Source of the DNA: Macrostomum hystrix
Lineage: Eukaryota > Animalia > Platyhelminthes
NCBI GenBank assembly: GCA_950097015.1
Contig: CATNEN010000010.1
Coordinates: forward strand, 248,001 to 312,000
Direction of reading: 5' to 3'
Length of the DNA: 64,000 bases
Of the stretch, positions 441-62,900 are shown piece by piece (the first letter of the stretch is position 1; each line of letters opens with the position of its first letter). Position numbers and translations under genes: made by a program. The notes beneath the pieces were generated by a model, which made no database searches, was not told the DNA's origin, and worked only from the letters and a program-made list of their open reading frames with translations.

Positions 441-2875
441 GACGTCTTCCTGCCACAGGGCTACCCAGACTCCGTGTCCTCTGATTACCTGACCTACCAG
501 CTGTGGGACACCGCCCAGGCATTCTGCAGCTCCGTCACCGGCGCCCTGGCCGGCCGGGCTGTCCTGACTGGCTACGGCGTCGGCGACCAGAGCGCCACGG
601 TGGCCGCCGCCACCCTCGCCTGGCTGCTGCGAGATGGCTGCGGGATGGTCGGTCGCATCCTGTTCACTTGGGCGCGCGGCGCCGCCCTCGACTGGGACTG
701 CAAGCGCTACCGCCTGCTGGCCGATGTGCTCAATGACCTGGCCATCCTGCTGCAGCTGCTCTGCCCGCTGGCCGGCTCGCCCGGCTCCGCCACCGTCGCG
801 GTCGTCTTGTGCGCGGCCTCCATGCTGCTGTCACTGGTGGGAGTCTGCGGCGGAGCCACGCGTGCTGCGCTCACCATGCACCAGGTGAGCTTTTGGCTGA
901 CTGCCTGTCTGATTTCGTTAAAACCTGCATATGACTGGTCTGGGTGTCTGTGTGAGTCTGTCTGCTCTTCTGCTGTGTGAGTCTGTCTGCTCTGTGTGAG
1001 TCTGTCTGCTCTTCTGCTCTGTGTGAGTCTGTCTGCTCTGTGTCAGTCTGTCTGCTCTTCTGCTCTGTGTGAGTCTGTCTGCTCTGTGTGAGTCTGTCTG
1101 CTCTGTGTGAGTCTGTCTGCTCTGTGTGAGTCTGTCTGCTCTTCTGCTCTGTGTGAGTCTGTCTGCTCTGTGTCAGTCTGTCTGCTCTTCTGCTGTGTGA
1201 GTCTGTCTGCTCTGTGTGAGTCTGTCTGCTCTTCTGCTGTGTGAGTCTGTCTGCTCTGTGTGAGTCTGTCTGCTCTTCTGCTGTGTGAGTCTGTCTGCTC
1301 TGTGTCAGTCTGTCTGCTCTGTGTGAGTCTGTCTGCTCTGTGTGAGTCTGTCTGCTCTTCTGCTCTGTGTGAGTCTGTCTGCTCTGTGTGAGTCTGTCTG
1401 CTCTTCTGCTCTGTGTGAGTCTGTCTGCTCTGTGTGAGTCTGTCTGCTCTGTGTGAGTCTGTCTGCTCTGTGTGAGTCTGTCTGCTCTGTGTGAGTCTGT
1501 CTGCTCTTCTGCTGTGTGAGTCTGTCTGCTCTGTGTGAGTCTGTCTGCTCTGTGTGAGTCTGTCTGCTCTTCTGCTGTGTGAGTCTGTCTGCTCTGTGTG
1601 AGTGTCTGCTCTGTGTGAGTCTGTCTGCTCTTCTGCTGTGTGAGTCTGTCTGCTCTGTGTGAGTCTGTCTGCTCTGTGTGAGTCTGTCTGTTCTGTGTGA
1701 GTCTGTCTGCTCTGTGTGAGTCTGTCTGCTCTGTGTGAGTCTGTCTGCTCTTCTGCTCTGTTAATTGTGGCGCTATCAGTCCTGTGTGTGTCTCTGTCAG
1801 TTTTGGTGATCTCTGTCTGTTTTTTGAGTGTCAGGCTGTCTGTTTTCTGTTAGTGTCGAGCTATCCTCTGTGTTTGTCTTTCCTGAGAGTCGGACTCACG
1901 CAGTGCTCAGCCTTTTTATTAAAACCAGTCAGCTGACCTTCACTGTTCACTCCATCAGTCAGCTGGTGAATTTTTTACTTTTCGAGTTTTTAGTTGCTCG
2001 AGACAATCTTTGACTCCGCTTTGCCCACCTTTTAGTTGGGTATTGCTGATCCTAATCGAATACTTCCCACTCGTGTCTCCTGACTGCATCTTGTATTTTG
2101 CAGTAATGCTTAGCAAAACATGCTTTGTTACAAGAGCTCCCCACCACAGGCCCGCAGGCACAACATGGCTGACGTGTCGGCCAAGGACGCATCGCAGGAG
2201 ACGCTGGTGAATTTGGGCGCACTGATTTTCAACCTACTGTTTGTGCCGCTCATCACTGGCGGCGCTGCCGTTGCCACCTACGCCCTGTTCACCGCCGGCC
2301 ACCTGTACTCCAATTGGCGCGCCGTGCGCTCGGTTGCCATGGAGACGCTAAATCCCAGCCGGCTGCACCTGGTGATCATTAGCTTCGTAGCCAGCGGCGG
2401 TCGCGTCTGCGCCGGCGTCGCCCAGGTGAACCGGTCCGAGCCGCTGGTCCGCCCGGCCGCCTGTCCGCTCCGCCTCGGCTGCTCCCTGTCCGACCCAGCC
2501 GCCGACATGCCACCTGGCCGCCTCCGCGAGGGCCTTCAACAACTGCGGCGACGCCGATTCACCGTCCTGGCCGGCCCCTCCGGCCGCTTCTACGCTCCGC
2601 TGTCCGAGGGCGCCACCGCGCAGGACCAGCTGAGGGCTGCGTTCGAGTCCGAGCTGCTCCACCTGGCCGCTACTCGGCCCGACCTGTTCGACGCTGTCGG
2701 CGGCTGCTTGGAGCTGCAGCAGCAGCAGCAGCAGTCTGCCCTAGAGGCCGCGGCTGCCTTGGCCGACCGGCTGATGCCGAACTTCCTGGCCGCGTTAGAC
2801 CGTGCCGGCTGGACCACCGAGCCGCTGATGCTTGGCGCAGGACAGCACCGCCTGGGCTGGGCAAAGTCCGCCTAA
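441..2875 (+). CDS. RUSF1: RUS1-family protein (root UVB sensitive 1 / C16orf58-like), 5'-partial; exons 441-884 and 2150-2875
   Basis: Exon 441-884 reads DVFLPQGYPDSVSSDYLTYQLWDT... and ends CAG|GTGAGC. The phase-0 acceptor CACAG|2150 continues ARRHNMADVSAKDASQETLVNL, both conserved RUS1 motifs. Earlier exons were not identified. Confidence 0.9.
945..1760 (+). repeat. Intronic minisatellite, 19-bp unit GTGTGAGTCTGTCTGCTCT with longer variants
   Basis: Direct tandem periodicity inside RUS1 intron 885-2149. Confidence 0.95.
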
Positions 2876-3289
2876 ATGAGCTCTGCTCACTGGCCTGACC
2901 GTTAGGCCGCTGCCTGAGTGACTGGTTGTCTTCCATCTAGCAGTGCTCCCGCTGCTCTGATCTATGCGGGCCTGGGGTCTAGTAGAAAGTTTCCATGTTT
3001 GTCTAGTCAGTCATTGTTAGTTGCCTTGATTGACTGATGCCCTCGCATTCATTGCGCGATATAATGATTATTCTCCTATGTCACAGAGAAGCTTTAATAA
3101 AATGATTTGTCTCAGTATAGACTCATAGAATTGTCTGCTAGTTGCATAGCCAAATCAAAGCTGTATCAGAGTCCAAGCTATTCCTTATCAGCTGTCACTC
3201 TTTCCTGCTGGCTCTGTTATATTTTATGTGCTCTCGCAGTTGGTTATTTACTCGAAGCATTGGCATTTCCACAGAAATCAGTGGAAAGA

Positions 3290-3497
3290 AGCCGCTGGCT
3301 GAGTGGTCTGAGGGGAGAAGCTGCTGCCTGAGTGACCTGAGGGGAGAAGCTGCTGCCTGAGTGACCTGAGGGGAGAAGCCGCTGCCTGAGTGACCTGAGG
3401 GGAGAAGCCGCTGCCTGAGTGACCTGAGGGGAGAAGCCGCTGCCTGAGTGACCTGAGGGGAGAAGCCGCTGCCTGAGTGACCTGAGGGAGAAGCTAC
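3290..3497 (+). repeat. 29-bp tandem repeat (GTGACCTGAGGGGAGAAGCCGCTGCCTGA), about 7 copies
   Basis: Period 29 seen directly (3361, 3390). Confidence 0.95.
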
Positions 3498-3618
3498 AGA
3501 AAATTTCAGCAATCCAAAGTTTATCTGTGCTGTGGATCCCAGCCTCCTGGCTGTTCTCGTACAAATTTAACGGTTCAAAATTGCAGTCCGTTAAAATTTG
3601 AGAGCCGATCAGCAGCGA

Positions 3619-4068
3619 ATGCAGAGCCAGCAGCAGCCGCCACAGCCTAAGCGGCCGGTTTCGAATCCTCGGCGTCGAGTTATATTCAAAAGCGCCGTGA
3701 CGAACAGCAACAGCGGCCTTGGCGAGCTGCTGAAGCTCCAGCTGGCTGCGGTCGTAGCCGCAGACTCGGCCGCCGTGGCTGCCACTTACGGGCCCTGGCA
3801 GCCTGCCAAGGTGCCTCTGCCGGCTTTTTACTATGTCGGTAGGCTGGTTGCGCCTTCCAAGCTGTCCGGTGGCAGCTCGAAGCCGACGGCTTCAGCGCAG
3901 AAACGCCGGCCGATGGTGCAGCTGAGCATCACCGAGTCCTTCCAGCACGCCAGGAAGCGGCGCCCAGCTACCGGCGCTGACTGCTGCCAGGAGAAGCTGC
4001 GCCGGCCTGAAAGACCGCGGCGTCAGCAGCAGCACCTTCTCATGACGGAAACAGGTCCCGGGAGCTGA
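3619..4068 (+). CDS. Divergent Cip/Kip-like CDK inhibitor candidate with a C-terminal PIP-degron-like motif
   Basis: RRVIF (RxL-like), YGPWQPAKVPLPAFYY (compare p27 YEWQEVEKGSLPEFYY) and QLSITESFQHARKRR (compare p21 QTSMTDFYHSKRR). The central WNFDF motif is not recognisable. Confidence 0.5.
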   Translation: MQSQQQPPQPKRPVSNPRRRVIFKSAVTNSNSGLGELLKLQLAAVVAADSAAVAATYGPWQPAKVPLPAFYYVGRLVAPSKLSGGSSKPTASAQKRRPMVQLSITESFQHARKRRPATGADCCQEKLRRPERPRRQQQHLLMTETGPGS

Positions 4069-4221
4069 GTAGACTTTGAGTAGACTCTTCTTTAACGTTG
4101 GCTGAGCCTGCGTTCTTTATTTCATGCCAGGTCTTCATTTTTGCCCATCATTGTTTACTCTGATCTTCGGCAGCTTACCCATGCTGCTCAAAACTTAAAC
4201 TGTGTCTGCCGCCAGATGTCT

Positions 4222-4445
4222 AGTTTGTCTACCCCAGCTGTCTACTCTGTCTACCCTAGCCTTATACACCCAGCTGTCTACTCAGCCTACCCCAGCTGTC
4301 TACTCTGTCTACCCCAGCTGTCTACTCTGTCTACCCCAGCTGTCCACGCTGTCTACCCCAGCTGTCCACGCTGTCTACCCCAGCTGTCTACTCTGTCTAC
4401 CCCAGCTGTCTACTCTGTCTACCCCAGCTGTCTACTCTGTCTGCC
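4222..4445 (+). repeat. 22-bp tandem repeat (CTACCCCAGCTGTCTACTCTGT)
   Basis: Period 22 seen directly. Confidence 0.9.
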
Positions 4446-5472
4446 GCAACTGTCTTCTCCTTACGAATACATATTACATCTGCTACTGAGTTCTGTATCA
4501 AATAGTTTACTCTTATCTAGTTGCCTGGCGGTTTGTTCAGTACTATTTCAAGTTTCTGTTTCCGCATTTGTTCAATCGGCCTTTTTCGCCAACTCGTCAG
4601 TCTGCCGGCTTGTTTTCGTTTTGAATTCGAAGCCTCGTTATTTTCTTGTTTGTGGTGTCTTTTATACACATTTTTGTTTTTTATGCTATATTTTTTTCTA
4701 ATTTCGCTCGAAATTATGTAGCAGAACGAAGGACTACATGTAGAAGCTTACTAGACGTAAAATGCGTCTCAACACAACACTCACGCTCTGTCTCGAATTC
4801 TGCTTGAGAATACATTGAGTACATGGCGAGTTGCGTTGTCAGTGTTAGGATGTGTACTTTTTGCGATGTTGTTTTTGATGTGCCTGACAGGTCTCACAGT
4901 TGAGCCATTTACGTCAGTGAATTTTCAAAGCAAGTACAGCACTCAATGAAATTGTCGCAGAGCGAAGCGTCCTTCTACCACTGATGGTCCTGCTTAGAAT
5001 TCTTGTATCATTTTTACCCGGCCAGAAGCAAATTTTTCCTTAGTTTTCCGGTTTATCAGTTATTTACATTTTTTGTCGTCCGTGTTATTCAGTTTTTTTC
5101 TGGCTAGCCAGGAACCAACTCCACAGCGCGCCGCAAGTGTTTTGGATTCTTTTTTTTTGTATCAAATAGTTGCGCTTTTGTCTTGTCTTTTTTGTTGATA
5201 TCTGGAATTCATTTCGATGTTAGACTAGGGTACACTTCCGCTCAGGTAGATGTGGTTTTATCTCTATGCCCTTGATATGTTGATACTGTCATTGTAACTT
5301 GGAGGTTGGAACTCACGGGCGTAATTTGCACGACAGCCCCAAGCCATCTCTACGCGGCTGCGCCCCAATTACGCAGCCTCGCTGCGTACTTGAGCTCAGA
5401 GACGACACTTGGTGAGAGGGGCCAACGCGTTAGACCACTCTGATACTCTCGTCCTCTTCTAGGACGCGATAT

Positions 5473-7250
5473 TGTGTCAGGAATAGCAATTCTCACTATA
5501 TTCTGGGTCAGGAATAGCAATCCTCACCATATTCTGGGTCAGAAATAGCAATCCTCACTATATTCTGGGTCAGGAATAGCAATCCTCACTATATTCTGGG
5601 TCAGGAATAGCAATCCTCACTATATTCTGGGTCAGGAATAGCAATCCTCACTATATTCTGGGTCAGGAATAGCAATCCTCACTATATTCTGGGTCAGGAA
5701 TAGCAATCCTCACTATATTCTGGGTCAGGAATAGCAATCCTCACTATATTCTGGGTCAGGAATAGCAATCCTCACTATATTCTGGGTCAGGAATAGCAAT
5801 CCTCACTATATTCTGGGTCAGGAATAGCAATCCTCACTATATTCTGGGTCAGAAATAGCAATTCTCACTATATTCTGGGTCAGGAATAGCAATTCTCACT
5901 ATATTCTGGGTCAGGAATAGCAATCCTCACTATATTCTGGGTCAGGAATAGCAATCCTCACTATATTCTGGGTCAGGAATAGCAATCCTCACTATATTCT
6001 GGGTCAGAAATAGCAATTCTCACTATATTCTGGGTCAGGAATAGCAATTCTCACTATATTCTGGGTCAGGAATAGCAATCCTCACTATATTCTGGGTCAG
6101 GAATAGCAATCCTCACTATATTCTGGGTCAGGAATAGCAATCCTCACTATATTCTGGGTCAGGAATAGCAATCCTCACTATATTCTGGGTCAGGAATAGC
6201 AATCCTCACTATATTCTGGGTCAGAAATAGCAATTCTCACTATATTCTGGGTCAGGAATAGCAATTCTCACTATATTCTGGGTCAGGAATAGCAATCCTC
6301 ACTATATTCTGGGTCAGGAATAGCAATTCTCACTATATTCTGGGTCAGGAATAGCAATCCTCACTATATTCTGGGTCAGGAATAGCAATCCTCACTATAT
6401 TCTGGGTCAGGAATAGCAATCCTCACTATATTCTGGGTCAGGAATAGCAATCCTCACTATATTCTGGGTCAGGAATAGCAATCCTCACTATATTCTGGGT
6501 CAGGAATAGCAATCCTCACTATATTCTGGGTCAGGAATAGCAATCCTCACTATATTCTGGGTCTGGAATAGCAATCCTCACTATATTCTGGGTCAGGAAT
6601 AACAATCCTCACTATATTCTGGGTCAGGAATAACAATTCTCACTATATTCTGGGTCAGGAATAACAATCCTCACTATATTCTGGGTCAGGAATAGCAATC
6701 CTCACTATATTCTGGGTCAGGAATAGCAATCCTCACTATATTCTGGGTCAGGAATAGCAATCCTCACTATATTCTGGGTCAGAAATAGCAATTCTCACTA
6801 TATTCTGGGTCAGGAATAACAATTCTCACTATAATATGGGTCAGGAATAGCAATCCTCACTATATTCTGGGTCAGGAATAGCAATCCTCACTATATTCTG
6901 GGTCAGGAATAGCAATCCTCACTATATTCTGGGTCAGGAATAGCAATCCTCACTATATTCTGGGTCAGGAATAGCAATCCTCACTATATTCTGGGTCAGG
7001 AATAGCAATCCTCACTATATTCTGGGTCAGGAATAGCAATTCTCACTATATTCTGGGTCAGGAATAACAATCCTCACTATATTCTGGGTCAGGAATAGCA
7101 ATCCTCACTATATTCTGGGTCAGGAATAGCAATTCTCACTATATTCTGGGTCAGGAATAGCAATCCTCACTATATTCTGGGTCAGGAATAGCAATCCTCA
7201 CTATATTCTGGGTCAGGAATAGCAATTCTCACTATATTCTGGGTCAGGAA
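5473..7250 (+). repeat. 31-bp minisatellite (CAGGAATAGCAATCCTCACTATATTCTGGGT), about 57 copies
   Basis: Highly homogeneous period-31 array with no spacers. Confidence 0.97.
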
Positions 7251-7543: not shown

Positions 7544-9729
7544 ATGTCTGCAACTGAGCAGAGCTACCTCTGCTCAGTGTGCTCATGCACCTGGCCGGCC
7601 GGCTATCACTACGGCGCCATCACCTGCCACGCCTGCAAGTCGTTCTTCTAGCGCACGGTGCAGTTCTCGCTGTCCTATTCCTGCATGCGCAAGCCGCGCC
7701 ACTGCTCGCTCAGCTCCGAGAAGAACTGCTCGTGTGGCTTCTGTCGCTTCCGTCGCTGCCTGGAGGTTGGCATGCGGCCCGCTCTGGTCAAGTCGCTGGC
7801 GCCCGACCTCGAGGGCCATCGGTCAGTCGTAGCGGTTGCAGCTTGTTCAAGATCTCCGGTAGCTTATCCCATGAGGTATGAAACATTCAGCGGGCTAACC
7901 CTGTATTGTCGGCTGCCACAATTGTGATATTTCTCAGCTTGCAATGCCTTGCAGCTCTGCTGATCGGCAAGCCGGAGGTTCTCAGCAGTCGCTTGTGCCA
8001 TTCAGCTCTGCCCGAGCCACCGTTACCTTGGTGCTGCCTGCCGGCCTGTCGCCGCAGCTGCCTCAGCTGCACCAGCAGTTCACCCAGCAGCAGCAGAGTC
8101 TCATAGGTCCGCCCTCAGCCCCGCCGCCTAAGAGGCTCCGCCGGCTGCTGCCGCGACTCCCGGAGATCCCAGTCGAGCATCACTGTCTGCGGTCGCAGCA
8201 AGCGGCGAGCAGCAGCGCCGGCAGTCTGACCCCAGACCAGCAGGCTGGCGACTTGCCGGATCTGGAGTCTGTGCGCATCGACCTCAGCGGCATGGCTGGG
8301 GTGCATGACCTGAGGATGATCATGTCCAATGGGATCTTCCTCCTCATTGAGGGCTACCTGAGCTCCATGTTGCGCTGGGTCAAAAAGCTGCCAGGCTTCG
8401 CCCGACTCCACATCAAGGACCGCGTGGCGCTAGTTCAGCGGCACTGGACATCATCGTCCTGCAGGTCCGCGGCAAATCTTGTTGTTATATGGGAAATAAT
8501 GGACATTGCTTGTCACTCCGACTTAGCCGATTCAAAATCGCCGCGACTCACCTCGCTTACCCACCCGGGTGGCCTGGAACTCGCAGCCCTACACTGGCAC
8601 TCTGCCACCCCGCTTACCCACTCAGGTGGCCTACTGGCACTCTGCCACCCCGCTTACCCACTCAGGTGGCCTACTGGCACTCTGCCTCCCCGCTTACCCA
8701 CTCAGGTGGCCTACTGGCACTCTGCCACCCCGCTTACCCACTCAGGTGGCCTACTGGCACTCTGCCACCCCGCTTACCCACTCAGGTGGCCTACTGGCAC
8801 TCTGCCACCCCGCTTACCCACTCAGGTGGCCTACTGGCACTCTGCCACCCCGCTTACCCACTCAGGTGGCCTACTGGCACTCTGCCACCCCGCTTACCCA
8901 CTCAGGTGGCCTACTGGCACTCTGCCACCCCGCTTACCCACTCAGGTGGCCTACTGGCACTCTGCCACCCCGCTTACCCACTCAGGTGGCCTACTGGCAC
9001 TCTGCCACCCCGCTTACCCGCCCAGGTGGCCTGGAACTCGCAGCCCTACACTGGCACTCTGCCACCCCGCTTACCCACTCAGGTGGCCTACTGGCACTCT
9101 GCCTCCCCGCTTACCCGCCCAGGTGGCCTGGAACTCGCAGCCCTACACTAGCACTCTGCCTCCCCGCTTACCCGCCCAGGTGGCCTGGAACTCGCAGCCC
9201 TACACTGGCACTCTGCCACCCCGCTTACCCACTCAGGTGGCCTACTGGCACTCTGCCTCCCCGCTTACCCGCCCAGGTGGCCTGGAACTCGCAGCCCTAC
9301 ACTGGCACTCTGCCACCCCGCTTACCCGACCAGGTGGCCTGGAACTCGCAGCCCTACACTGGCACTCTGCAGTTCTGCGAAGGTTTCAGCCTGCACGAGT
9401 CGCAGGACTCGCGCTCGCCGCAGCCGCCCCGCATCAGCCGGCACACCCGCTGCCTGGCGCAGAGACTCAGCCAGCTCAGCCTTAGCCACGCTGAGCTGCT
9501 CCAGCAGCGCATCGTCTTGTTCCTTGAGACCGCCTGCTGGACCGACTGGATCGATGCGGACAGCATTGATCAGATACAGAGGCGCCACCTGCGGGCTCTG
9601 ATCCGCCTCTGCCCTTGCCAGCTCCGCCGGGCCCGCCTCCTGCAGCTGAGCAGTCACGTGACTGCCAGCCGCCTGCTCACGCTGGCCTACCTGGACCAAG
9701 CTGCGAATGCTGCGAATCTCCCTGGCTGA
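7544..9729 (+). pseudogene. Nuclear hormone receptor (C4 DBD + LBD) with in-frame TAG; exons about 7544-7821, 7955-8464, 9373(or 9390)-9729
   Basis: ATG7544 reads CSVC...HYGAITCHACKSFF*RTV...C...C.CGFCRFRRCLEVGM, with TAG at 7649-7651. The LBD signature WVKKLPGFARLHIKDRVAL is in exon 2, and helix 7-10-like LSQLSLSHAELLQQRIVLF...IDQIQ is in exon 3. Confidence 0.75.
8545..9372 (+). repeat. Intronic minisatellite of mixed 40-bp and 57-bp units, ending at the exon-3 acceptor of the nuclear receptor
   Basis: TCTGCC recurs at 8641/8681 (40 bp) and 9001/9058 (57 bp). The last partial unit ends CTCTGCAG|. Confidence 0.92.
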
Positions 9730-10370
9730 TGGTGCGCCCAGAGAGCTGCAGCCACTGTTCTGAGCTCACAACTCCCCACTAAGCCACTCCATTTTTGTTG
9801 TTGTCCGTCGTCTGCCGTTGCCAAGGCTGCATCTTTTTGTTGCCTATAGCTACATTCTCGTCAAATGACATTTTATCAACTTGCTTTAAGTTGATATCCC
9901 TTTATTTAGCTTTTCTATACTGGTATATACACCAAATGTACAAATTTACATTTTTATATCAGTTTTCTAGACAATTTATTTGCTCCTTTGTTGTATTTTG
10001 ACGCCTGACCTCACGCTGGTTCATTTCTGAGCTCATTCTCTTCTTAAGTATATTCTATTTCTGAGCAGATTACCTTCAATCTCATGATTTCCTTCGGCAC
10101 CCAGCAACCGCGGCTTATGTCTGTCCGACTGCCACTGAGACAATCTTGTTTGAGGAAATTTGTTTCCGGACCATCAGACTCACATCTTGAAAGATTCTGT
10201 GTGCGAGTTTGGTCTATTGTTTTATTTATCTCCCCTAAAAGCCTTGCACATTCAGCTTATCAGGAGCCACTTTTCCTGATTTACGAGTAATTAGCTTTTA
10301 ACAGTTTTTTAAATAAACCGCTGTACAAACCGACTCTCAGGGTTTTGTTCTTTTCGTTTCCCATGTGGAT

Positions 10371-10890
10371 TATTCGCATTTCCCATGCCACGGAGGGGAT
10401 TATTTGCGTTTCCCATGCCACAGTGGGGATTATTCGCATATCCCATGCCACAGTGGGGATTATTTGCATTTCCCATGCCACAGTGGGGATTATTCGCATC
10501 TGCCATGCCACAGTGGGGATTATTCGCATCTGCCATGCCACAGTGGGGATTATTTGCATTTCCCATGCCACAGTGGGGATTATTCGCATCTGCCATGCCA
10601 CAGTGGGGATTATTCGCATCTGCCATGCCACAGTGGGGATTATTCGCATCTGCCATGCCACAGTGGGGATTATTCGCATCTGCCATGCCACAGTGGGGAT
10701 TATTCGCATCTGCCATGCCACAGTGGGGATTATTCGCATCTGCCATGCCACAGTGGGGATTATTCGCATCTGCCATGCCACAGTGGGGATTATTCGCATC
10801 TGCCATGCCACAGTGGGGATTATTCGCATCTGCCATGCCACAGTGGAGATTATTCGCATCTGCCATGCCACAGTGGGGATTATTCGCATT
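10371..10890 (+). repeat. 30-bp minisatellite (TGCCATGCCACAGTGGGGATTATTCGCATC), about 17 copies
   Basis: Exact period 30, which explains the six overlapping repetitive ORFs here. Confidence 0.97.
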
Positions 10891-54794: not shown

Positions 54795-55661
54795 TCAAAC
54801 AATGACACAGAACCACCGGCTGGTCTCGCCAGCGGCGTCATCTGCACCGCCTGCAGACTCCACTGCATCGGCAAAATCGGACTCTACCTCCATTGCGGAC
54901 CCGACACCATCGGAATCAGCTTCATCGGTCGACCCACAGCGTTCAACAGTCTCGACTGCATCCTGGAACTTCTCCTCAGACGCTGGCTCTTCAGATTTCG
55001 CATCCTCTCGCGCCTCTCCATCAGGAAGCGAGGCCATCTGCCGGCTGAGGGCCAGCCAGGCCGCACCCAGGCGCTCCGTCATGCTTTCATGCGCCAGGCG
55101 CCGGCACCGCTGCTGCTGCTCCTGGGCCGACTGAGACTCGGCATCTGCGACCTCGCCAACTTTGGCCTGTTCTGCGTCATCCTCGCCTTCGACCTCGTCC
55201 AGCGGCCGTAGACGCCTCCAGGCGTCCCGCAGCCGGAGCAGCGCTCCGTCCAGATTCCGCTCCTGACAGGCTGCGCCGCCATCGCCGAAAGCTCCAAGTC
55301 CAAGCTCTTCGTCCAAGACCTCCGCGCTTGGTCGTCGGCGCCACATGTCGAGCACCAAGCCGCGCCAGTGGGCCTTCTCAGCATCGGAAAGACTCTTCCG
55401 GCCGCCCTGCCGCTGCAGGAGCAGCAGCTGCTTGGTGTGCTCGCTAATTTCGCTGTCCGAATCGCTGGGCAGTGGGGCCCTGGCTAGGTACAGTCTGCAC
55501 AGTCGGGCCACGACAAGGCCCGACAGGGCGGCGCCCGCCATGATGACAGTCGTCAACAGCAGCCGGAGCGACGCCGCGGCGTTATTCTTAGCCGGCGCAG
55601 CAGCTGTGGAGCTCAGGAGCCAGCTGCTGCCGTTGACAGCGTCACCAATGAACAGCTCCAT
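54795..55661 (-). CDS. Unknown protein (about 288 aa) with an N-proximal transmembrane helix and an acidic C-terminal region
   Basis: Long GC-rich ORF with hydrophobic LLLTTVIMAGAALSGLVVARLC followed by Glu/Asp/Ala-rich sequence. No family was recognised. Confidence 0.55.
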   Translation of the reverse strand: MELFIGDAVNGSSWLLSSTAAAPAKNNAAASLRLLLTTVIMAGAALSGLVVARLCRLYLARAPLPSDSDSEISEHTKQLLLLQRQGGRKSLSDAEKAHWRGLVLDMWRRRPSAEVLDEELGLGAFGDGGAACQERNLDGALLRLRDAWRRLRPLDEVEGEDDAEQAKVGEVADAESQSAQEQQQRCRRLAHESMTERLGAAWLALSRQMASLPDGEAREDAKSEEPASEEKFQDAVETVERCGSTDEADSDGVGSAMEVESDFADAVESAGGADDAAGETSRWFCVIV

Positions 55662-56562
55662 CACAAAAGCAACGCTAAATAATTCTGAAAGGACTGCCCC
55701 TGAGCAGAGCTCTTTCTAATTTTTGAGTATAAATCCGCGCTCGCGAAGCGACACTCCCTGCCCCTCGCTATGGGGTCATCGTAAGCGAAGGCAGCGGCAG
55801 CTGATAAGTCAGAGACAATGGTTAACGCGAGCATTGAGCGATGCTAGAGCCTGCAATGAGCACTCAAAGTTTCTAACTGCTCCAGAACAGCCCGAAAAAC
55901 AGAGCGCAGAAAGATATTTAAAAAAAGACTACTGTTAGTGCAGGACTGTACGCCCCACCACACCCTACCTCCTAAAAGGTACGACATGCACTGGGAAGGC
56001 GTCTAGTGTCTAGTAAAAGTATTAACAGTGCAGACAGAGAAATATTTCAGCGCTTACTGACACAGCCTGCCGACTTTTCATTGGCATTTTACATGCAGTT
56101 GGTATGAAACTGAGTTGTCCTGTGGCTGAAGCAAATAATTAAAAAATGAGCAATTCAGTGACAAACATTTGATTAATTCCAAAAAGTATATTATTTTTTT
56201 GTGAAAAGTAACAGAAAACATCGGTAACAAAAGTGAAACAACGCTGCTTTTATTCGAGTTCAAAAAGATGTTCTTTAGCCAACTCGATATAGCAAAGCGC
56301 AAATCTGAACGCCGGTGAAACTGAAGCTACGGCGCTAGAATTCTGACGAAAAATGCGCAGCGAAAGCTAAATTTTCTGAGCACAAGCCGCTTGCGCGCAA
56401 TCGGACAAAGTCAATCCCGACACGAAGGGGAAGGCAGCGATGAAGCAGGGGAAGGATAACATAACCGGATTAGAAAAACGCAGGAATATGCGAAACGGAA
56501 AAAACTAGTAAAAATCCAATCTCAGATCTCTCAGTTCCTGAACGGAAAGCTGGCTCAAGCTT

Positions 56563-57624
56563 TCAAGCGGAATCTCCGCTGCCGGCTGCGCCCTTCGAGG
56601 CCTCCTCCTTCTTCACCGGGTTGATGTTGCGGAACGAGAAGGTGTAGCTCGTGCGACGAGCCATGGGGTCCTTGGGGATGCGATGAACCCACAGCTCCTC
56701 GATGGCGCCCTCCGTGATCACCAAGTCACCGTGGGCAGAGCGCAACCTCACGTAGCGATCGTCGCGGCCCTTCCTCAAGAACTCCACGTACCTGGCCTGA
56801 CCGAGGGTCACTGCAGCGATGTAAGGGTGATCACCCAGAGGCTTCTCAGTCTCAGAATGCCAGCCAAGGCTGTCCCTGCCGTTGCGGTACATGTAGCAAA
56901 TTACTGCGTTGAACTCGCGACCAACCGCCTTCTCCACGAGCTCCTTCAGCTCCTTCAGCTTCGGGTTCCACTCGTTGCAGTTCTCAAACTTGTTGCCACT
57001 GTACTCAAAGTCTGGCCCGATGTAGCATGTCAGACGAGGCTCCTGACGCTCTTTGCCGTCCTTCGTAGTGGAGGTCAGCTGCTTCCACGAAAGGTTCTGC
57101 TTCAGAGAATCCATGAACATTTCTGCGACAGTCTTGTTCAAGAAGCTCGGCATGAACGAGATCGCAGCGTGCACGCCGTTCTTCGTACGATCCAACTGGT
57201 ACATGCCGGGCAGGTTGATCTCCACCGGTCCGTGGGCCATGTACATCAGCTGCAGCAGGTTTATCTGCGGCAGTCCAGCCACACTCGACCTCGGTGCCTG
57301 CTGCGTCCTCTGAACATCGCCGCCAGCTGTTGGCGCCGCCTTGGCGGTCGGAGCGGGCTTGTCCTGGTTGTACGTCTCGTCGAACACAACAGTCACATTC
57401 TCCTTCACGTCCTTGCTCGGGTGCCAGATCTGGACGTGTTCCTCAATCACCTTCTCGGAGTTGGTGATCATGCCGCACTGCTTGCACTTGTTCAGCTTCA
57501 CCTGGATCTTGCAGTCGTGCTCCTTCAGGTGGGCGTCCAATGATGCTACCTTCAGCGTCATGAACTGGCACTGGGGGCAGGCCAGGATCAGGATCTCGGA
57601 CGCGTCGATCGGCACTCGATTCAT
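56563..57624 (-). CDS. C2H2 zinc finger x2 + ALKBH2/3-like 2OG-Fe(II) dioxygenase domain, copy A (353 aa)
   Basis: CPQC...HLKEH and CKQC...HVQIWH fingers; QEPRLT, YRNGRDSLGWHSE, HGDLV and WVHRIPK AlkB motifs. Confidence 0.88.
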   Translation of the reverse strand: MNRVPIDASEILILACPQCQFMTLKVASLDAHLKEHDCKIQVKLNKCKQCGMITNSEKVIEEHVQIWHPSKDVKENVTVVFDETYNQDKPAPTAKAAPTAGGDVQRTQQAPRSSVAGLPQINLLQLMYMAHGPVEINLPGMYQLDRTKNGVHAAISFMPSFLNKTVAEMFMDSLKQNLSWKQLTSTTKDGKERQEPRLTCYIGPDFEYSGNKFENCNEWNPKLKELKELVEKAVGREFNAVICYMYRNGRDSLGWHSETEKPLGDHPYIAAVTLGQARYVEFLRKGRDDRYVRLRSAHGDLVITEGAIEELWVHRIPKDPMARRTSYTFSFRNINPVKKEEASKGAAGSGDSA

Positions 57625-58695
57625 GTCTTGTTTGCTCTGAAAAAATTATCGGTCGGAAAACAAAACTATTTTCGTGCAAAAGGGATTCATTTTTACGTTT
57701 TTGATGGCAAAGTCCGCATCAGTTCATCAAAAGCCGGCTGTCTATCTCTAGTCGTGAAAAACCTTTTTTTATTCACCTAAATTCCTGAGTTTTATAAGAC
57801 TGAAGGCTATGTTACTGACATTTTTAGAAAACAAAATTAAATGAAAAAAGGGAAAAATCGTAATATAAACCAGGACTGTTAGAATTTATTATTGCTTGTA
57901 TCCAACTGCTTTTAGGCAACGTGTCCATAAAATTCTGCCAACGCGATAAAGAGGGATTAAAGATAGGCGCTGGACAACCTGTAGGGTGCCATCGCTGATC
58001 TCACACAAGCCGGGTTCCGCTTCAGCAGATCAGTTTTAGAGAACAATGTGGGGAAACAGACTCGCGTACGACCGAGAACATGCGACCGCCACTGCGCTTT
58101 AGTAGTCGTTTACTTTAGTGATAACAGGAAACCGTCGCAGTGGGGTGCTAGGTGGAGCCTGACCCAGTATGCGGTCAAGCATCTATACTGTGGATTGCTA
58201 TTGTGCTACACTTATGAATATATTTATTACTGTCCAAGCGAACAACACGGGCGCTAGGGGACTAGCTATCCGAGCTGGAGACCAGAGCACGGGCTACTGG
58301 CAGCGGTATTATACCTAACACAGAATGAGACTATATGGTTTTCTTATTTAGCGCAGAGAAGTACGTTGGAGTAGCAGCAGCGACGCATAGGTGGCGAGAG
58401 AACAGTCCTGCACTTTTGACTAGCCAGACAACAAAATGTGTGTGACCTAGCTAATGCGGCTATGAGTGGGTAAACAATAAATAAACTCGGATCGAAAAAT
58501 GGGGCTACTAGTAGAAAAGCGTATAAAGAGAAAAACAAAGATTGCTTTGAATATTTAATAATTTTGAGGATTTCTTCGCGTCTTTGTTCAACAAAAATTT
58601 CACTTTTTAAAACAGCAACAGCTGCAAAGTTGCAGCGAACACACAGAGTGGGTGGCGGACACACTCGGCGCCTACGAAACTCGACGCCCGAGGCC

Positions 58696-59958
58696 TCACT
58701 TCTTCTTTCCCTTGCCGCTGCCCACCGGGCCGGGACTCTTGCCCTTCTTACCAGCCGGGGCGGCCGCGGCGGCCGGGGTGGCGGCGGCGTCGTCGGCGGC
58801 GGCCGGCTCTGCCTTCAAGGCAGGAGCCTCGCTTGGTTTCTCGGCGGGTGTGTCAGCTGCGGGCTTGGCGACTGCCTCAGCGGTGGGGGCGGCGGCGGCA
58901 GCAGCGGCGGGGGCTGCGGAGGGCTTGTTGGGCTCGGCTTTTTTCTTCACCGGGTTGATGTTGCGGAACGAGAAGGTGTAGCTCGTGCGACGAGCCATGG
59001 GGTCCTTGGGGATGCGATGAACCCACAGCTCCTCGATGGCGCCCTCCGTGATCACCAGGTCACCGTGGGCAGAGCGCAACCTCACGTAGCGATCGTCGCG
59101 GCCCTTCCTCAAGAACTCCACGTACCTGGCCTGACCGAGGGTCACTGCAGCGATGTAAGGGTGATCACCCAGAGGCTTCTCAGTCTCAGAATGCCAGCCA
59201 AGGCTGTCCCTGCCGTTGCGGTACATGTAGCAAATTACTGCGTTGAACTCGCGACCAACCGCCTTCTCCACGAGCTCCTTCAGCTCCTTCAGCTTCGGGT
59301 TCCACTCGTTGCAGTTCTCAAACTTGTTGCCACTGTACTCAAAGTCTGGCCCGATGTAGCATGTCAGACGAGGCTCCTGACGCTCTTTGCCGTCCTTCGT
59401 AGTGGAGGTCAGCTGCTTCCACGAAAGGTCCTGCTTCAGAGAATCCATGAACATTTCTGCGACAGTCTTGTTCAAGAAGCTCGGCATGAACGAGATCGCA
59501 GCGTGCACGCCGTTCTTCGTACGATCCAACTGGTACATGCCGGGCAGGTTGATCTCCACCGGTCCGTGGGCCATGTACATCAGCTGCAGCAGGTTTATCT
59601 GCGGCAGTCCAGCCACACTCGACCTCGGTGCCTGCTGCGTCCTCTGAACATCGCCGCCAGCTGTTGGCGCCGCCTTGGCGGTCGGAGCGGGCTTGTCCTG
59701 GTTGTACGTCTCGTCGAACACAACAGTCACATTCTCCTTCACGTCCTTGCTCGGGTGCCAGATCTGGACGTGTTCCTCAATCACCTTCTCGGAGTTGGTG
59801 ATCATGCCGCACTGCTTGCACTTGTTCAGCTTCACCTGGATCTTGCAGTCGTGCTCCTTCAGGTGGGCGTCCAATGATGCTACCTTCAGCGTCATGAACT
59901 GGCACTGGGGGCAGGCCAGGATCAGGATCTCGGACGCGTCGATCGGCACTCGATCCAT
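58696..59958 (-). CDS. C2H2 zinc finger x2 + ALKBH2/3-like domain, copy B (420 aa) with Ala/Pro/Lys-rich tail
   Basis: Near-identical to copy A up to RNINPVKK, then a distinct AKP-rich tail ending GKGKKK. Confidence 0.88.
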   Translation of the reverse strand: MDRVPIDASEILILACPQCQFMTLKVASLDAHLKEHDCKIQVKLNKCKQCGMITNSEKVIEEHVQIWHPSKDVKENVTVVFDETYNQDKPAPTAKAAPTAGGDVQRTQQAPRSSVAGLPQINLLQLMYMAHGPVEINLPGMYQLDRTKNGVHAAISFMPSFLNKTVAEMFMDSLKQDLSWKQLTSTTKDGKERQEPRLTCYIGPDFEYSGNKFENCNEWNPKLKELKELVEKAVGREFNAVICYMYRNGRDSLGWHSETEKPLGDHPYIAAVTLGQARYVEFLRKGRDDRYVRLRSAHGDLVITEGAIEELWVHRIPKDPMARRTSYTFSFRNINPVKKKAEPNKPSAAPAAAAAAAPTAEAVAKPAADTPAEKPSEAPALKAEPAAADDAAATPAAAAAPAGKKGKSPGPVGSGKGKKK

Positions 59959-62900
59959 CGTTCAGTGCTGAAGTTGTGAGAACGAAATCGTTAAATTTAC
60001 ATGATTTAGAATTAAGTACTACTGCTTACCTAATACTTAAGGTCTACTAAATAGGACTATTCATAAAGCTGTGATACTGAAGGCATGATACTCTTGTAAA
60101 TAGATTGTGTTAATTGAGAAAGTTTAATAACTTAGGTATGCTTTTAGGTTTATGCTGCAAAAAAGATACTTTTACGTTTCACAGTCAATTAGTAAAAAAC
60201 ATACATGACATACATTAGACTTAACAGTTAGCTAGAACTATTGTGAGTATCTAGGGTATATGATTTCAAGTATATATATAGAAATCTTGATAGTCTTGAA
60301 ATCAAAAGCTACATGTCAGTCAGTAATAATATATTACCAAATCTAGCCTGACATAAATGATACAGAAATATGCTAAAATTAAAAATTAAAACACTTTTCA
60401 TAGGACTATCTAATACAAAAATGACAACTTCCAAAATCTTAAAACAATTTTATGTAATAAAGCTTATTCAGGCATTGCCATATTTAGCCCAACATCCTCA
60501 GCATAAAGAGAGGTTGATTTATTAGGAAATTTCATAAAAAGTAGTTTGGTACTACTATTATATATATCATATACTTAGTAAGTAAAATTCAAAATTTGAT
60601 TCAAAATAGTAGACATTTGACAATAGAAAACGAAATTCATAGTATAATATTATCAATATTCATAGTATCAGCCTATCTGCTCCAAATTTCTTGGGTTGGG
60701 CAAGCTTGGAGCTTCAGCTAGCAGCCTGTCAGCTTTGTCAACTGACAACTGTCAACTGTCAATTCATTATCAACAATGGTACTAGTAGGCTCAAACAGAT
60801 TGGCACAAAACCTGTCTTTGATTTGGACCTTCATTGACATGACAAACTGATTCTCCAAGGCTATCATGAATGTGGTCTTTTCAATTGCTAATAAACATTC
60901 CATTTTGTTCTTTAACTGTTACTGGGCAAACCTGACCTACCTTTGGATTATGCTTAGAGCAGCGCCAGTAAGTAATATTTGTCCTTGGATGATTCTTAAC
61001 TATGAAGGCAAATCTATCTGACAAGATCAGCCACTGTTTCTCAGTTTGTCCAATGTAGCATTATTATGCTCATTCAGCTTTTGGCTGAAACAGCTATGGC
61101 CAAAATGGCTTTTGGCCAAAGTGGCTATGGCCAAAACTGCATATGGCCGAAACGACCGGAATTCATTCATACATCGGAAATTATTTTAAATTCAAATTGC
61201 CCTAAATGTCAAAATAGAAAACTTAAGCATTTAGTAGGCCCTAACACAGAACTATGTGGATAATTTCTGAACTATTGGCATGGCATATATATATTTATTA
61301 TTATTAATTTGACATACATAACTTGCGTCGACTTTAATGTTTTACTTTCAGGCAAAAACTGTTCTTATCATGAAATAATACAAACACAAAATACAAAAAA
61401 TTGTATTGTGAATCTGAATATTGCAACTACGATTGCAATGTAATTTTAATCAGAATTTAAATTTTGACTTTGGGAAATCATTCGGCATGTCAATCACCGT
61501 GTATTTAAATGCGTATTTAAATTAAAACAGTAAGATCTTAGTAATAAAAAAACAGCGATAACATTTCGGTTCGGATTTCTAGTACGACGCATTACACGAA
61601 AAATGACTTCAATTAGAGTTCAAATTTTCGTTTTCGAAGGCGTCAAATTTAACGAAACGGCTAAAGTAAAATAAACATAGTAACATTAATTCTTGAAACA
61701 GAAAAGTTTTGTTGATAATTTGAAAGTTTCAAATATATTTTAAAGATTTAGTACGCAGAAATGCAGCAAAATAGTTCCTTGAAAAATGTACACTGGCTTA
61801 TTACAGTTAGTAACAAAATTTAATTGGGGAGACTAAACTATATCCGAAAACTAAAGTGTCATGGTTTTGGTGTTCTTGGATCACTAGTAACTTCATAATT
61901 CTTGAAAAGTAGTTTTTGCTGCCCATAGATTTGAATCAGAAATTAAACTAGCAAAAGAGCCCAAATTATATTAATTTGCGGTAATTAAATTTTATGACTG
62001 GCAAATCAAAGTCAAATAAGAGCGATTTCAAATTTGCAACATTTTTTTTCAGATTGGGATATTTGAACACTGTATAAAACACAGGGACTACTATAACGTT
62101 TGATTTGTGCAGAGACAGCTTCAAGGACATTTCTGGAGAACATTTGATGCTATACCCCTAATTCAGCGGAACATTTTGGAAGAAAATTTTACTGGCATCG
62201 GCATGTTTGCTTGTATTTCAGTAACAAAAGATTTAATACAGCAAAACGCAACAATTGGTAAACAAACAACATCAGATATCTCTCATCAATGAGTTAAAGT
62301 TATTGGATGAATGGGTAATGGGTAATAAGACAACACCATGTAACAGTACAGACTAACAACGAAATGTGCAAAAACAAGACAAAGGCGGCATAAAATATGA
62401 AGTGGACCTGCGTATTACGAAAGTTTAAATTAAGCACGATGCTCAAATCCGCGCTTTACGGCGCAGTTTTGTCAGCTGGCGTTAACTTGCGCCACTGGGC
62501 TGTTGGGCAGTTTTGCAGCTCCGGATCAGAGTTTTAAAAAAACAATTTCAACAGACGGCGCGCTGCGGAAGCGCAAGCAGAAGAGATAAAATAGCCCGCA
62601 ATTGCAGGCTGCTGAACTCGTGATGCACAGCTCAGCTAGTGCGAGGTAAAGCTGGCGCAGCATTAAATGTTTTCCATAAATTTCGTTAAAGCTTCTCGAG
62701 AAAAATGAACTTCAGAAAGTAAAAGAGGGATAAGTTCCGAAAAATGGTAAAAGTTATGACATTCTTTGAGCGAATTTGAGACCAGAAGGAAACTTTGGTC
62801 GGACTCATTCGTGAATAATAAGTCTTCGCTTTATTTTCGCTTTTTTTACCATGAAGGACAACAGAAACCAATAAGAAATAAAATTAGCATATATCTTGGC

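Follow-up and report, generated by a model that had tools for sequence, protein, structure and literature searches.

The window analysed here is a 64,000-nucleotide (nt) stretch of the genome of the flatworm Macrostomum hystrix (GenBank assembly GCA_950097015.1, contig CATNEN010000010.1, positions 248,001 to 312,000), in which the listing of open reading frames (ORFs) places two intronless genes in tandem, head to tail, on the minus strand at 56563-57624 and 58696-59958. Their products are 96% identical and share one architecture, namely two C2H2 zinc fingers, a linker and an ALKBH3-type domain with a rewired active site. The short paralogue (56563-57624; 353 amino acids, aa) carries its fingers at aa 16-36 and 47-68, the linker at about aa 76-125, the AlkB domain at about aa 126-340 and a tail ending in GSGDSA, and the long paralogue (58696-59958; 420 aa) runs on into an Ala/Pro/Lys-rich tail ending in KKGKSPGPVGSGKGKKK. 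Direct reading of both copies gives C16-x2-C19-x12-H32-x3-H36 for the first finger and C47-x2-C50-x12-H63-x4-H68 for the second, both within the classical spacing C-x2-4-C-x12-H-x3-5-H, and all eight ligands are unchanged in Macrostomum lignano. The Pfam C2H2 models score below threshold on this region (12-14 bits against 27; CEP104_ZnF 20 against 27.4), where an AlphaFold2 model has strand-strand-helix twice, at a predicted local distance difference test (pLDDT) score of just 31-68.

Human ALKBH3 (PDB 2IUW, 8JNK, 8JNR and 9NCZ) is an Fe(II)- and 2-oxoglutarate (2OG)-dependent demethylase of 1-methyladenine and 3-methylcytosine in single-stranded DNA and RNA. Profile score and fold together place the C-terminal domain of both paralogues in the AlkB family, among the ALKBH2/3-type members: PF13532 (2OG-FeII_Oxy_2) matches aa 156-319 with an E-value of 1e-13 (52 bits, cutoff 31.2), and a phmmer search of all PDB sequences returns human ALKBH3 as the top match (E 1.5e-33, aa 130-338, about 33% identity), with ALKBH2 far weaker (E 4e-9). 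The AlphaFold2 model, built from 106 homologues, has a pLDDT above 95 over about aa 115-340, and Foldseek aligns it to ALKBH3 structures with target-normalised template modelling (TM) scores of 0.90-0.95 and root-mean-square deviations of 1.3-2.3 Å, the highest score being that to 8JNK. Assignment to the ALKBH3 rather than the ALKBH2 subtype follows from the Foldseek ranking, in which ALKBH3 stands above ALKBH2, and from a hydrophilic hairpin, T187-K188-D189, that aligns to R122-E123-D124 (RED) of the human protein, where ALKBH2 would have VFG. Residue roles that distinguish ALKBH3 from ALKBH2 have been described, with R131 and Y143 proposed as base contacts (PMC10816986).

In what follows, human residue numbers are those given by the chain offset of the PDB alignment, and residues of the flatworm protein are numbered as in the 353-aa copy. 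The phmmer alignment runs without gaps through the motifs of the active site, pairing WHSE with WHSD, CYMYRN with CNLYRN and RRTSYTFSFR with REPRVNLTFR (this protein first, ALKBH3 second). The iron of ALKBH3 is held by H191, D193 and H257 (PMC10816986). The corresponding triad here is H256-x-E258...H314, in which both histidines are kept and D193 has become E258; Asp stands at this position in 99% of the 101 other ALKBH2/3-type homologues, and Glu in not one of them. The superfamily iron motif, as worded in PMC10816986, admits Asp or Glu. The N-x-Y pair (N179 and Y181), which makes hydrogen bonds to 2OG, reads Y244-M-Y246, so that Y181 is kept as Y246 and N179 is replaced by Tyr, and L177 is likewise changed, to I242. 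In place of R-x-N-x-T-x-R the strand reads S326-Y-T328-F-S330-F-R332, where R269, N271 and T273 are exchanged for Ser, Thr and Ser and the last Arg alone is retained (R275 = R332). The AlkB residue homologous to R269, Arg204, makes a salt bridge to the C5 carboxylate of 2OG (PMC7467159). The base-pocket residues R131, Y143 and E195 are all kept, as R197, Y208 and E260. On these alignments, the co-substrate half of the site has been rebuilt, with the metal ligands and the base pocket left alone.

The placement of Ser at R269 depends on the register of this strand. An 18-residue spacing between the distal His and the final Arg is common to the query, human ALKBH3 and the nearest relatives; the gapless register is therefore right, and Ser truly occupies the R269 position. 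An alternative register that sets R324 onto R269, prompted by local phmmer alignments that put the RxNxTxR of some bacterial proteins two columns earlier, was rejected on the same spacing. Arg324 and Arg323 lie two and three residues upstream of S326, and the nearest outgroup also has Arg at the Arg324 position. The substitutions recur in both copies, in both M. lignano orthologues, at a third M. lignano locus and in RNA-derived contigs, and are therefore not sequencing noise. The original prediction, made from the window alone, had described two C2H2 fingers joined to an ALKBH2/3-type domain in both paralogues, which the ligand patterns, PF13532 and the top match bear out, and the comparison of a predicted structure with ALKBH3 that it proposed gave the TM score of 0.95 to 8JNK. 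It had also named HxE (WHSE) for HxD, Tyr at the 2OG-binding Asn (CYMYRN) and an intact distal His and terminal Arg, all of which hold. Of its wording that the first Arg of RxxxxxR is 'Ser or shifted', the Ser stands and the shift falls with the rejected register. The three departures that it counted are real, although the remodelling is wider and takes in N271T, L239S, M247T, Q252E and others.

To measure the breadth of this remodelling, 1.84 billion representative proteins were searched exhaustively with phmmer, which gave 4427 matches, six of them below an E-value of 1e-30; domains were aligned for the best 150 of the 4427 representatives and their cluster members (168 domains). Among these best 150 representatives the rewired residue set is confined to the present family, and Glu in the D193 column is found in 7 of the 168 domains, all from Macrostomum and all from this family. 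Nearly every aligned homologue whose C-terminus is complete has R-x-[NS]-x-[TS]-x-R. Glu at D193, Ser at R269, Tyr at N179 and Glu at Q252 are each absent from the 101 other homologues; the N179 position is Asn in 96% of them, and Gln252 is conserved in 100%, as against Glu in the rewired family. Fifty-six columns are at least 75% conserved in the 101 homologues, and the rewired family keeps 35 of them, including H191, H257, Y181, R275, R131, Y143 and E195. Thirteen columns are clearly family-specific (L177I, N179Y, D193E, Ser to A271, Phe to V280, L239S, M247T, Q252E, R269S, I270Y, N271T, L272F and T273S), and those named here lie mostly in or beside the 2OG strand. By its residues, the window pair is a lineage-restricted variant of the ALKBH3 kind whose rewired set is unique among the close homologues sampled.

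Other ALKBH3-like representatives depart from the motifs in their own ways: P0073 has Leu at R269 and is otherwise canonical, P0059 is without H191 and D193, P0071 has His for D193 and retains H191, and P0038 also departs. A word-index protein search, run with a single query and with a profile, returned M. lignano entries only and missed the relatives P0004 to P0007 described below, and is not counted as evidence of absence; a feature search of the ESM Atlas gave only generic algal 2OG clusters at 0.83-0.85 and was uninformative. In the open-access literature we found no description of a finger-AlkB fusion, of an HxE AlkB or of a Macrostomum AlkB, and none under the identifiers of the M. lignano genes.

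Several relatives share the architecture without the rewired site. The P0007 group of M. lignano (PAA75158.1; 467-484 aa) has two fingers, HxD, RINLTFR and Ile at N179; P0005 (ENA assembly, 373 aa) has one finger, HxD, RVNFTFR and Thr at N179; and P0004, encoded by the intron-containing gene L002 (ENA ERZ25070786 ctg135792l, 2554-4259), has three fingers, HxD, RINFTFR and Ile at N179. Like the window pair, these proteins join one to three N-terminal C2H2 fingers through a linker to an ALKBH3-type domain and have N179 already altered; unlike it, they keep HxD and R-x-N-x-T-x-R. The finger 2 ligands are invariant in P0004, P0005 and P0007. P0007 also has finger 1, which in L002 is encoded by the first exon. 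Their database names are automatic only (Fe2OG dioxygenase or C2H2-type domain-containing protein). The stored P0004 protein is without the last exon, which carries HRVPKDHYTQRCRINFTFR, and the L002 gene is flanked by retrotransposon ORFs (RVT_1, rve). Two further M. lignano proteins of the shared ALKBH2/3 superclade, P0006 and P0154 (PAA75878.1 and PAA53807.1), have no fingers and are fully canonical at the cofactor site (N, Y, HxD, H and RINLTFR).

In a maximum-likelihood tree of 106 domains, with which an earlier tree agrees, the finger-bearing proteins form one clade in the order P0007, P0005, P0004 and then the rewired family (Shimodaira-Hasegawa-like approximate likelihood-ratio supports 86, 94, 95 and 99), and P0006 and P0154 fall outside it. 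The stem of the rewired family is 0.5 substitutions per site long in this tree, and about 0.5-0.7 when the earlier tree is included, and the branches within the family are very short. Since P0007, P0005 and P0004/L002 have fingers together with HxD and RxNxTxR, fusion and rewiring are separate events. The topology indicates that the fingers were gained once, that Asn179 was lost early and that D193E, R269S and N271T arose as a package on a single branch and were then frozen, so that the finger-AlkB fusion predates the rewiring. The original prediction had presented the fusion and the rewired site together, and this part is revised: the fusion also occurs with a canonical site. The search for the same architecture in other animals that it proposed is answered in the same divided way, with fingers plus AlkB in P0007, P0005 and P0004/L002 and the rewired residues, among the best 150 representatives, in the Macrostomum family only, and the N179 change that it singled out is real, although Ile or Thr in canonical finger-bearing relatives dates the loss of Asn before the D193E/R269S/N271T package.

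Outright decay is seen elsewhere in the family. At a third M. lignano locus (L004 3001-7139, NIVC01000499.1, P0003/P0152), a degenerate AlkB-like domain precedes a rewired domain, both encoded in one exon (5457-7136), and the gene model joins the AlkB exon to an upstream two-finger exon. In this degenerate domain, the first of P0003, the iron ligands H, D and H are all gone outright, unlike those of the window proteins, and it serves as an example of genuine decay within the family. DNMT1/3 and ALKB2 persist in M. lignano (PMC9246332); a canonical ALKBH3-like gene is present there too, and the rewired paralogue was therefore free to specialise.

Both window genes are transcribed. The RNA evidence consists of contigs of four public runs placed on 56000-60400. 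They cover only 56212/56303-57637 and 57870-59968, without joints, and at 57637 and 59968 they continue into letters whose reverse complement is CTGCGAAGACTCAATTTATTGCAT, corresponding to nt 11-34 of the 35-nt M. lignano spliced leader (PMC8629364). The genome has a cag acceptor at each of these points on the minus strand, at 57637-57639 for the short copy (exon from 57636, 12 nt before the ATG) and at 59968-59970 for the long copy (exon from 59967, 9 nt before the ATG). As leader-bounded, joint-free contigs meet genomic cag acceptors, both genes yield minus-strand, intronless, trans-spliced mRNAs. The 3' untranslated region (UTR) of the long copy is about 830 nt (57870-58695, minus strand; contig pieces 57870-58972 without joints) and ends about 230 nt upstream of the short-copy acceptor; that of the short copy is about 260-350 nt (56212-56562, minus strand; contig pieces 56212/56303-56638). 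The roughly 230 nt between the long-copy 3' UTR and the short-copy acceptor (57638-57869) have no RNA contig. The gene pair may be an operon-like unit. The spliced leader itself ends in ATG, which on the short copy is in frame with the ORF (57625-57639), meets no stop and would add MSKQD, and on the long copy (59959-59970) is followed by TGA after two codons.

The same tandem pair, in the same order and syntenic, is present in M. lignano at locus L001 (NIVC01000625.1), with a long copy at 6007-7200 (397 aa, its tail as in the window long copy) and a short copy at 9474-10535 (353 aa, ending in GASGDSA). The closest database protein is a partial M. lignano entry of 84% identity. The NCBI model for this locus, BOX15_Mlig024840g2 (L001 6001-10347, 292 aa), is a chimera of both copies with an out-of-frame end, and the intact ORFs of 397 and 353 aa lack annotation as such. 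Between window and M. lignano the ratio of non-synonymous to synonymous substitution rates (dN/dS) is 0.14 overall at a dS of about 0.7. It is lowest for the fingers (0.08), slightly higher for the AlkB domain (0.12) and highest for the linker (0.30), the poorly conserved stretch at about aa 76-125; the pair is under strong purifying selection. Comparison of the window with contigs of closely related samples (56724-57335 and 58827-59334) shows differences that are mostly non-synonymous, in small numbers: in the short copy of one run (X2) six of seven are so (T273A, S209C, N177D, S114N, T107M and A97V), in contrast to the long-term dN/dS of 0.14. These differences touch no active-site residue.

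Within each species the two copies are nearly identical over their coding cores. In the window, blastn aligns 56609-57624 of the short copy, from the A of the ATG to near codon 339, with 58943-59958 of the long copy (both minus strand) at 99.7% identity (3 mismatches in 1016 nt), the 5' flanks and 3' ends being unrelated; the M. lignano counterpart spans 1041 nt at 99.1% (L001 6005-7045 against 9472-10512). Because cores are near-identical within species while tails pair across species, the copies evolve in concert by gene conversion. Conversion is confined to the coding core in both species (ATG to about codon 339-346), and promoters, UTRs and tails remain distinct between copies and are orthologous from one species to the other. 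The last 66 nt of the long copy (58695-58760 against L001 7136-7201), encoding PAGKKGKSPGPVGSGKGKKK and the stop, are 95.5% identical at the DNA level compared with about 84% for the rest of the gene, and on this comparison the PAGKKGKSPGPVGSGKGKKK-coding end is unusually constrained. Between the M. lignano copies lies a 37-nt minisatellite of 33.5 copies (L001 8089-9322), and nothing comparable is found between the window copies.

Downstream of the pair, a minus-strand ORF of 289 aa at 54795-55664 has no Pfam match and has an orthologue at L001 12074-12865. The two orthologues are only 41% identical, as against 84% for the AlkB pair, so the neighbour evolves fast relative to the pair. Two plus-strand ORFs antisense to the genes (56683-57543 and 58564-59877) were set aside: the spliced leader identifies the minus strand as sense, and these frames are taken to mirror a coding region rich in GC.

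What the rewired site does can be framed by comparison with human ALKBH3. The window proteins resemble it in fold, in H191, H257, Y181, R275, R131, Y143 and E195 and in the hydrophilic hairpin (TKD for RED), and differ in having two C2H2 fingers in place of a disordered N-terminus, an Ala/Pro/Lys tail (long copy) and the exchanges D193E, N179Y, R269S, N271T, T273S, L177I, Q252E, M247T and L239S. We favour a still-catalytic oxygenase with non-canonical co-substrate binding, a reading suggested by the residue pattern that we regard as about an even call. The metal would still be bound through His256, Glu258 and His314, and a flipped-out base would still be accepted via R197, Y208 and E260. The protein would then most likely be an oxidative nucleic-acid demethylase with a 2-oxo-acid site that lacks the canonical Arg salt bridge, in which the C5 carboxylate might instead be held by Arg324 or Arg323, or the enzyme might work with another 2-oxo acid. 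The fingers, plus the Lys-rich tail in the long copy, would plausibly tether it to nucleic acid. The 2OG pocket was rebuilt and has since been conserved, and its chemistry may have changed with it.

Three observations carry this reading. First, the H-E-H triad, Y181, R275 and the base pocket are retained, which argues against simple decay. Second, the stem replaced 13 conserved residues and spared the metal ligands and both remaining 2OG contacts, from which it would appear that metal binding and probably 2-oxo-acid binding stayed under selection. Lastly, the sole change in a metal ligand is from Asp to Glu, the other acidic residue, so that the metal-binding carboxylate is preserved, and the Tyr, Ser and Thr replacements keep hydrogen-bonding groups. 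A His-x-Glu...His triad, with a Glu ligand compatible with catalysis, is known from JmjC demethylases and clavaminate synthase; these enzymes still bind the C5 carboxylate of 2OG with a Lys or Arg and represent different subfamilies of the fold, in which we claim no membership for the window proteins. Several points weigh against a catalytic protein. Loss of the C5-binding Arg would be expected to cripple 2OG binding in canonical members, the bulky Tyr244 might occlude the site, and the PF13532 match ends at profile position 173 of 194, ahead of the RxxxxxR region. Moreover, the statistical weight of triad conservation is low, because the rewired set is known from just two species plus a single additional paralogue, at 78-84% identity.

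The strongest rival, less probable in our view and still a serious contender, is a pseudoenzyme or reader that would be unable to turn over 2OG but would retain the fold of ALKBH3, its base pocket and perhaps a metal in a structural role; together with the fingers it would serve as a scaffold or as a non-catalytic binder of methylated or single-stranded nucleic acid. Its best argument is the missing C5-binding Arg, without which such enzymes are normally disabled; this Arg changed together with three other 2OG-holding residues (R269S, N271T, N179Y and D193E), to which can be added the Gln, invariant in 100 other homologues, that is Glu here. M. lignano has the canonical P0006 as well as ALKB2 (PMC9246332), so that repair would not hinge on the rewired paralogue, and a fully dead AlkB-like domain exists in the same gene family (P0003). 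Against a reader, the H-E-H triad, Y181 and R275 all persist although the stem spans about 0.5-0.7 substitutions per site, and the changes are chemically conservative and not random. A dN/dS of 0.12, as measured for the AlkB domain, is compatible with constraint on any function and is neutral between oxygenase and reader.

A bolder version of the catalytic reading, which we consider a long shot, is that an ALKBH3-derived oxygenase abandoned 2OG altogether; the neutral Ser/Thr/Tyr pocket and the longer Glu would suit a 2-oxo acid that has no distal carboxylate, or a different reductant. Such an enzyme, directed by its fingers to specific DNA or RNA in a flatworm with DNMT1/3 retained, would, if real, represent a natural switch of co-substrate within the AlkB family. 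Improbable as well is an ordinary ALKBH3 repair enzyme with normal co-substrate use, whose substitutions are neutral lineage noise. Its overall fold and substrate-pocket residues are indeed those of ALKBH3, the Asn179 position is already Ile or Thr in otherwise canonical finger-bearing relatives, and HxE triads work in other 2OG oxygenases; however, the Glu at D193, Ser at R269, Tyr at N179 and Glu at Q252 each have no counterpart in the 101 other homologues, the RxNxTxR strand is altered at five of its seven positions, and the changes arose jointly on one branch and were then frozen, unlike neutral drift. An assembly or annotation artefact, or a pair of decaying functionless retrocopies, is refuted by ORFs intact in two species with distinct orthologous tails, synteny and a dN/dS of 0.14, and by the transcription and trans-splicing of both copies, even though the window genes are intronless where the nearest outgroup L002 has introns, the NCBI M. 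lignano model is chimeric and ATTCATTGCATG at L001 9450-9473, upstream of the M. lignano short copy, matches the last 12 nt of the leader with one mismatch. This last hint is weak, and an origin by retrocopying of a spliced-leader mRNA was rejected, since the 12-mer fails to reach significance (shuffle p about 0.08) and none of the other three copies has it.

The AlkB family is a model for the direct reversal of nucleic-acid methylation, and HxD...H and RxNxTxR are treated as near-invariant in it. The window pair represents a natural, expressed and strongly constrained member in which the carboxylate ligand has changed and the co-substrate salt bridge appears lost, with the iron ligands and base pocket remaining. 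Since close relatives with the same fusion keep the normal site, rewired and normal states are directly comparable, and the family offers a test of how far the 2OG site tolerates rewiring. The locus also illustrates cleanly how gene conversion can stay within a coding region, a pattern conserved in two species. RNA interference knockdown is in use in M. lignano (PMC12732829). The rewired proteins would be candidates for a natural reader or an alternative-co-substrate enzyme, and would place a putative zinc-finger-targeted AlkB in the flatworm model M. lignano, which has DNA-methylation machinery (PMC9246332).

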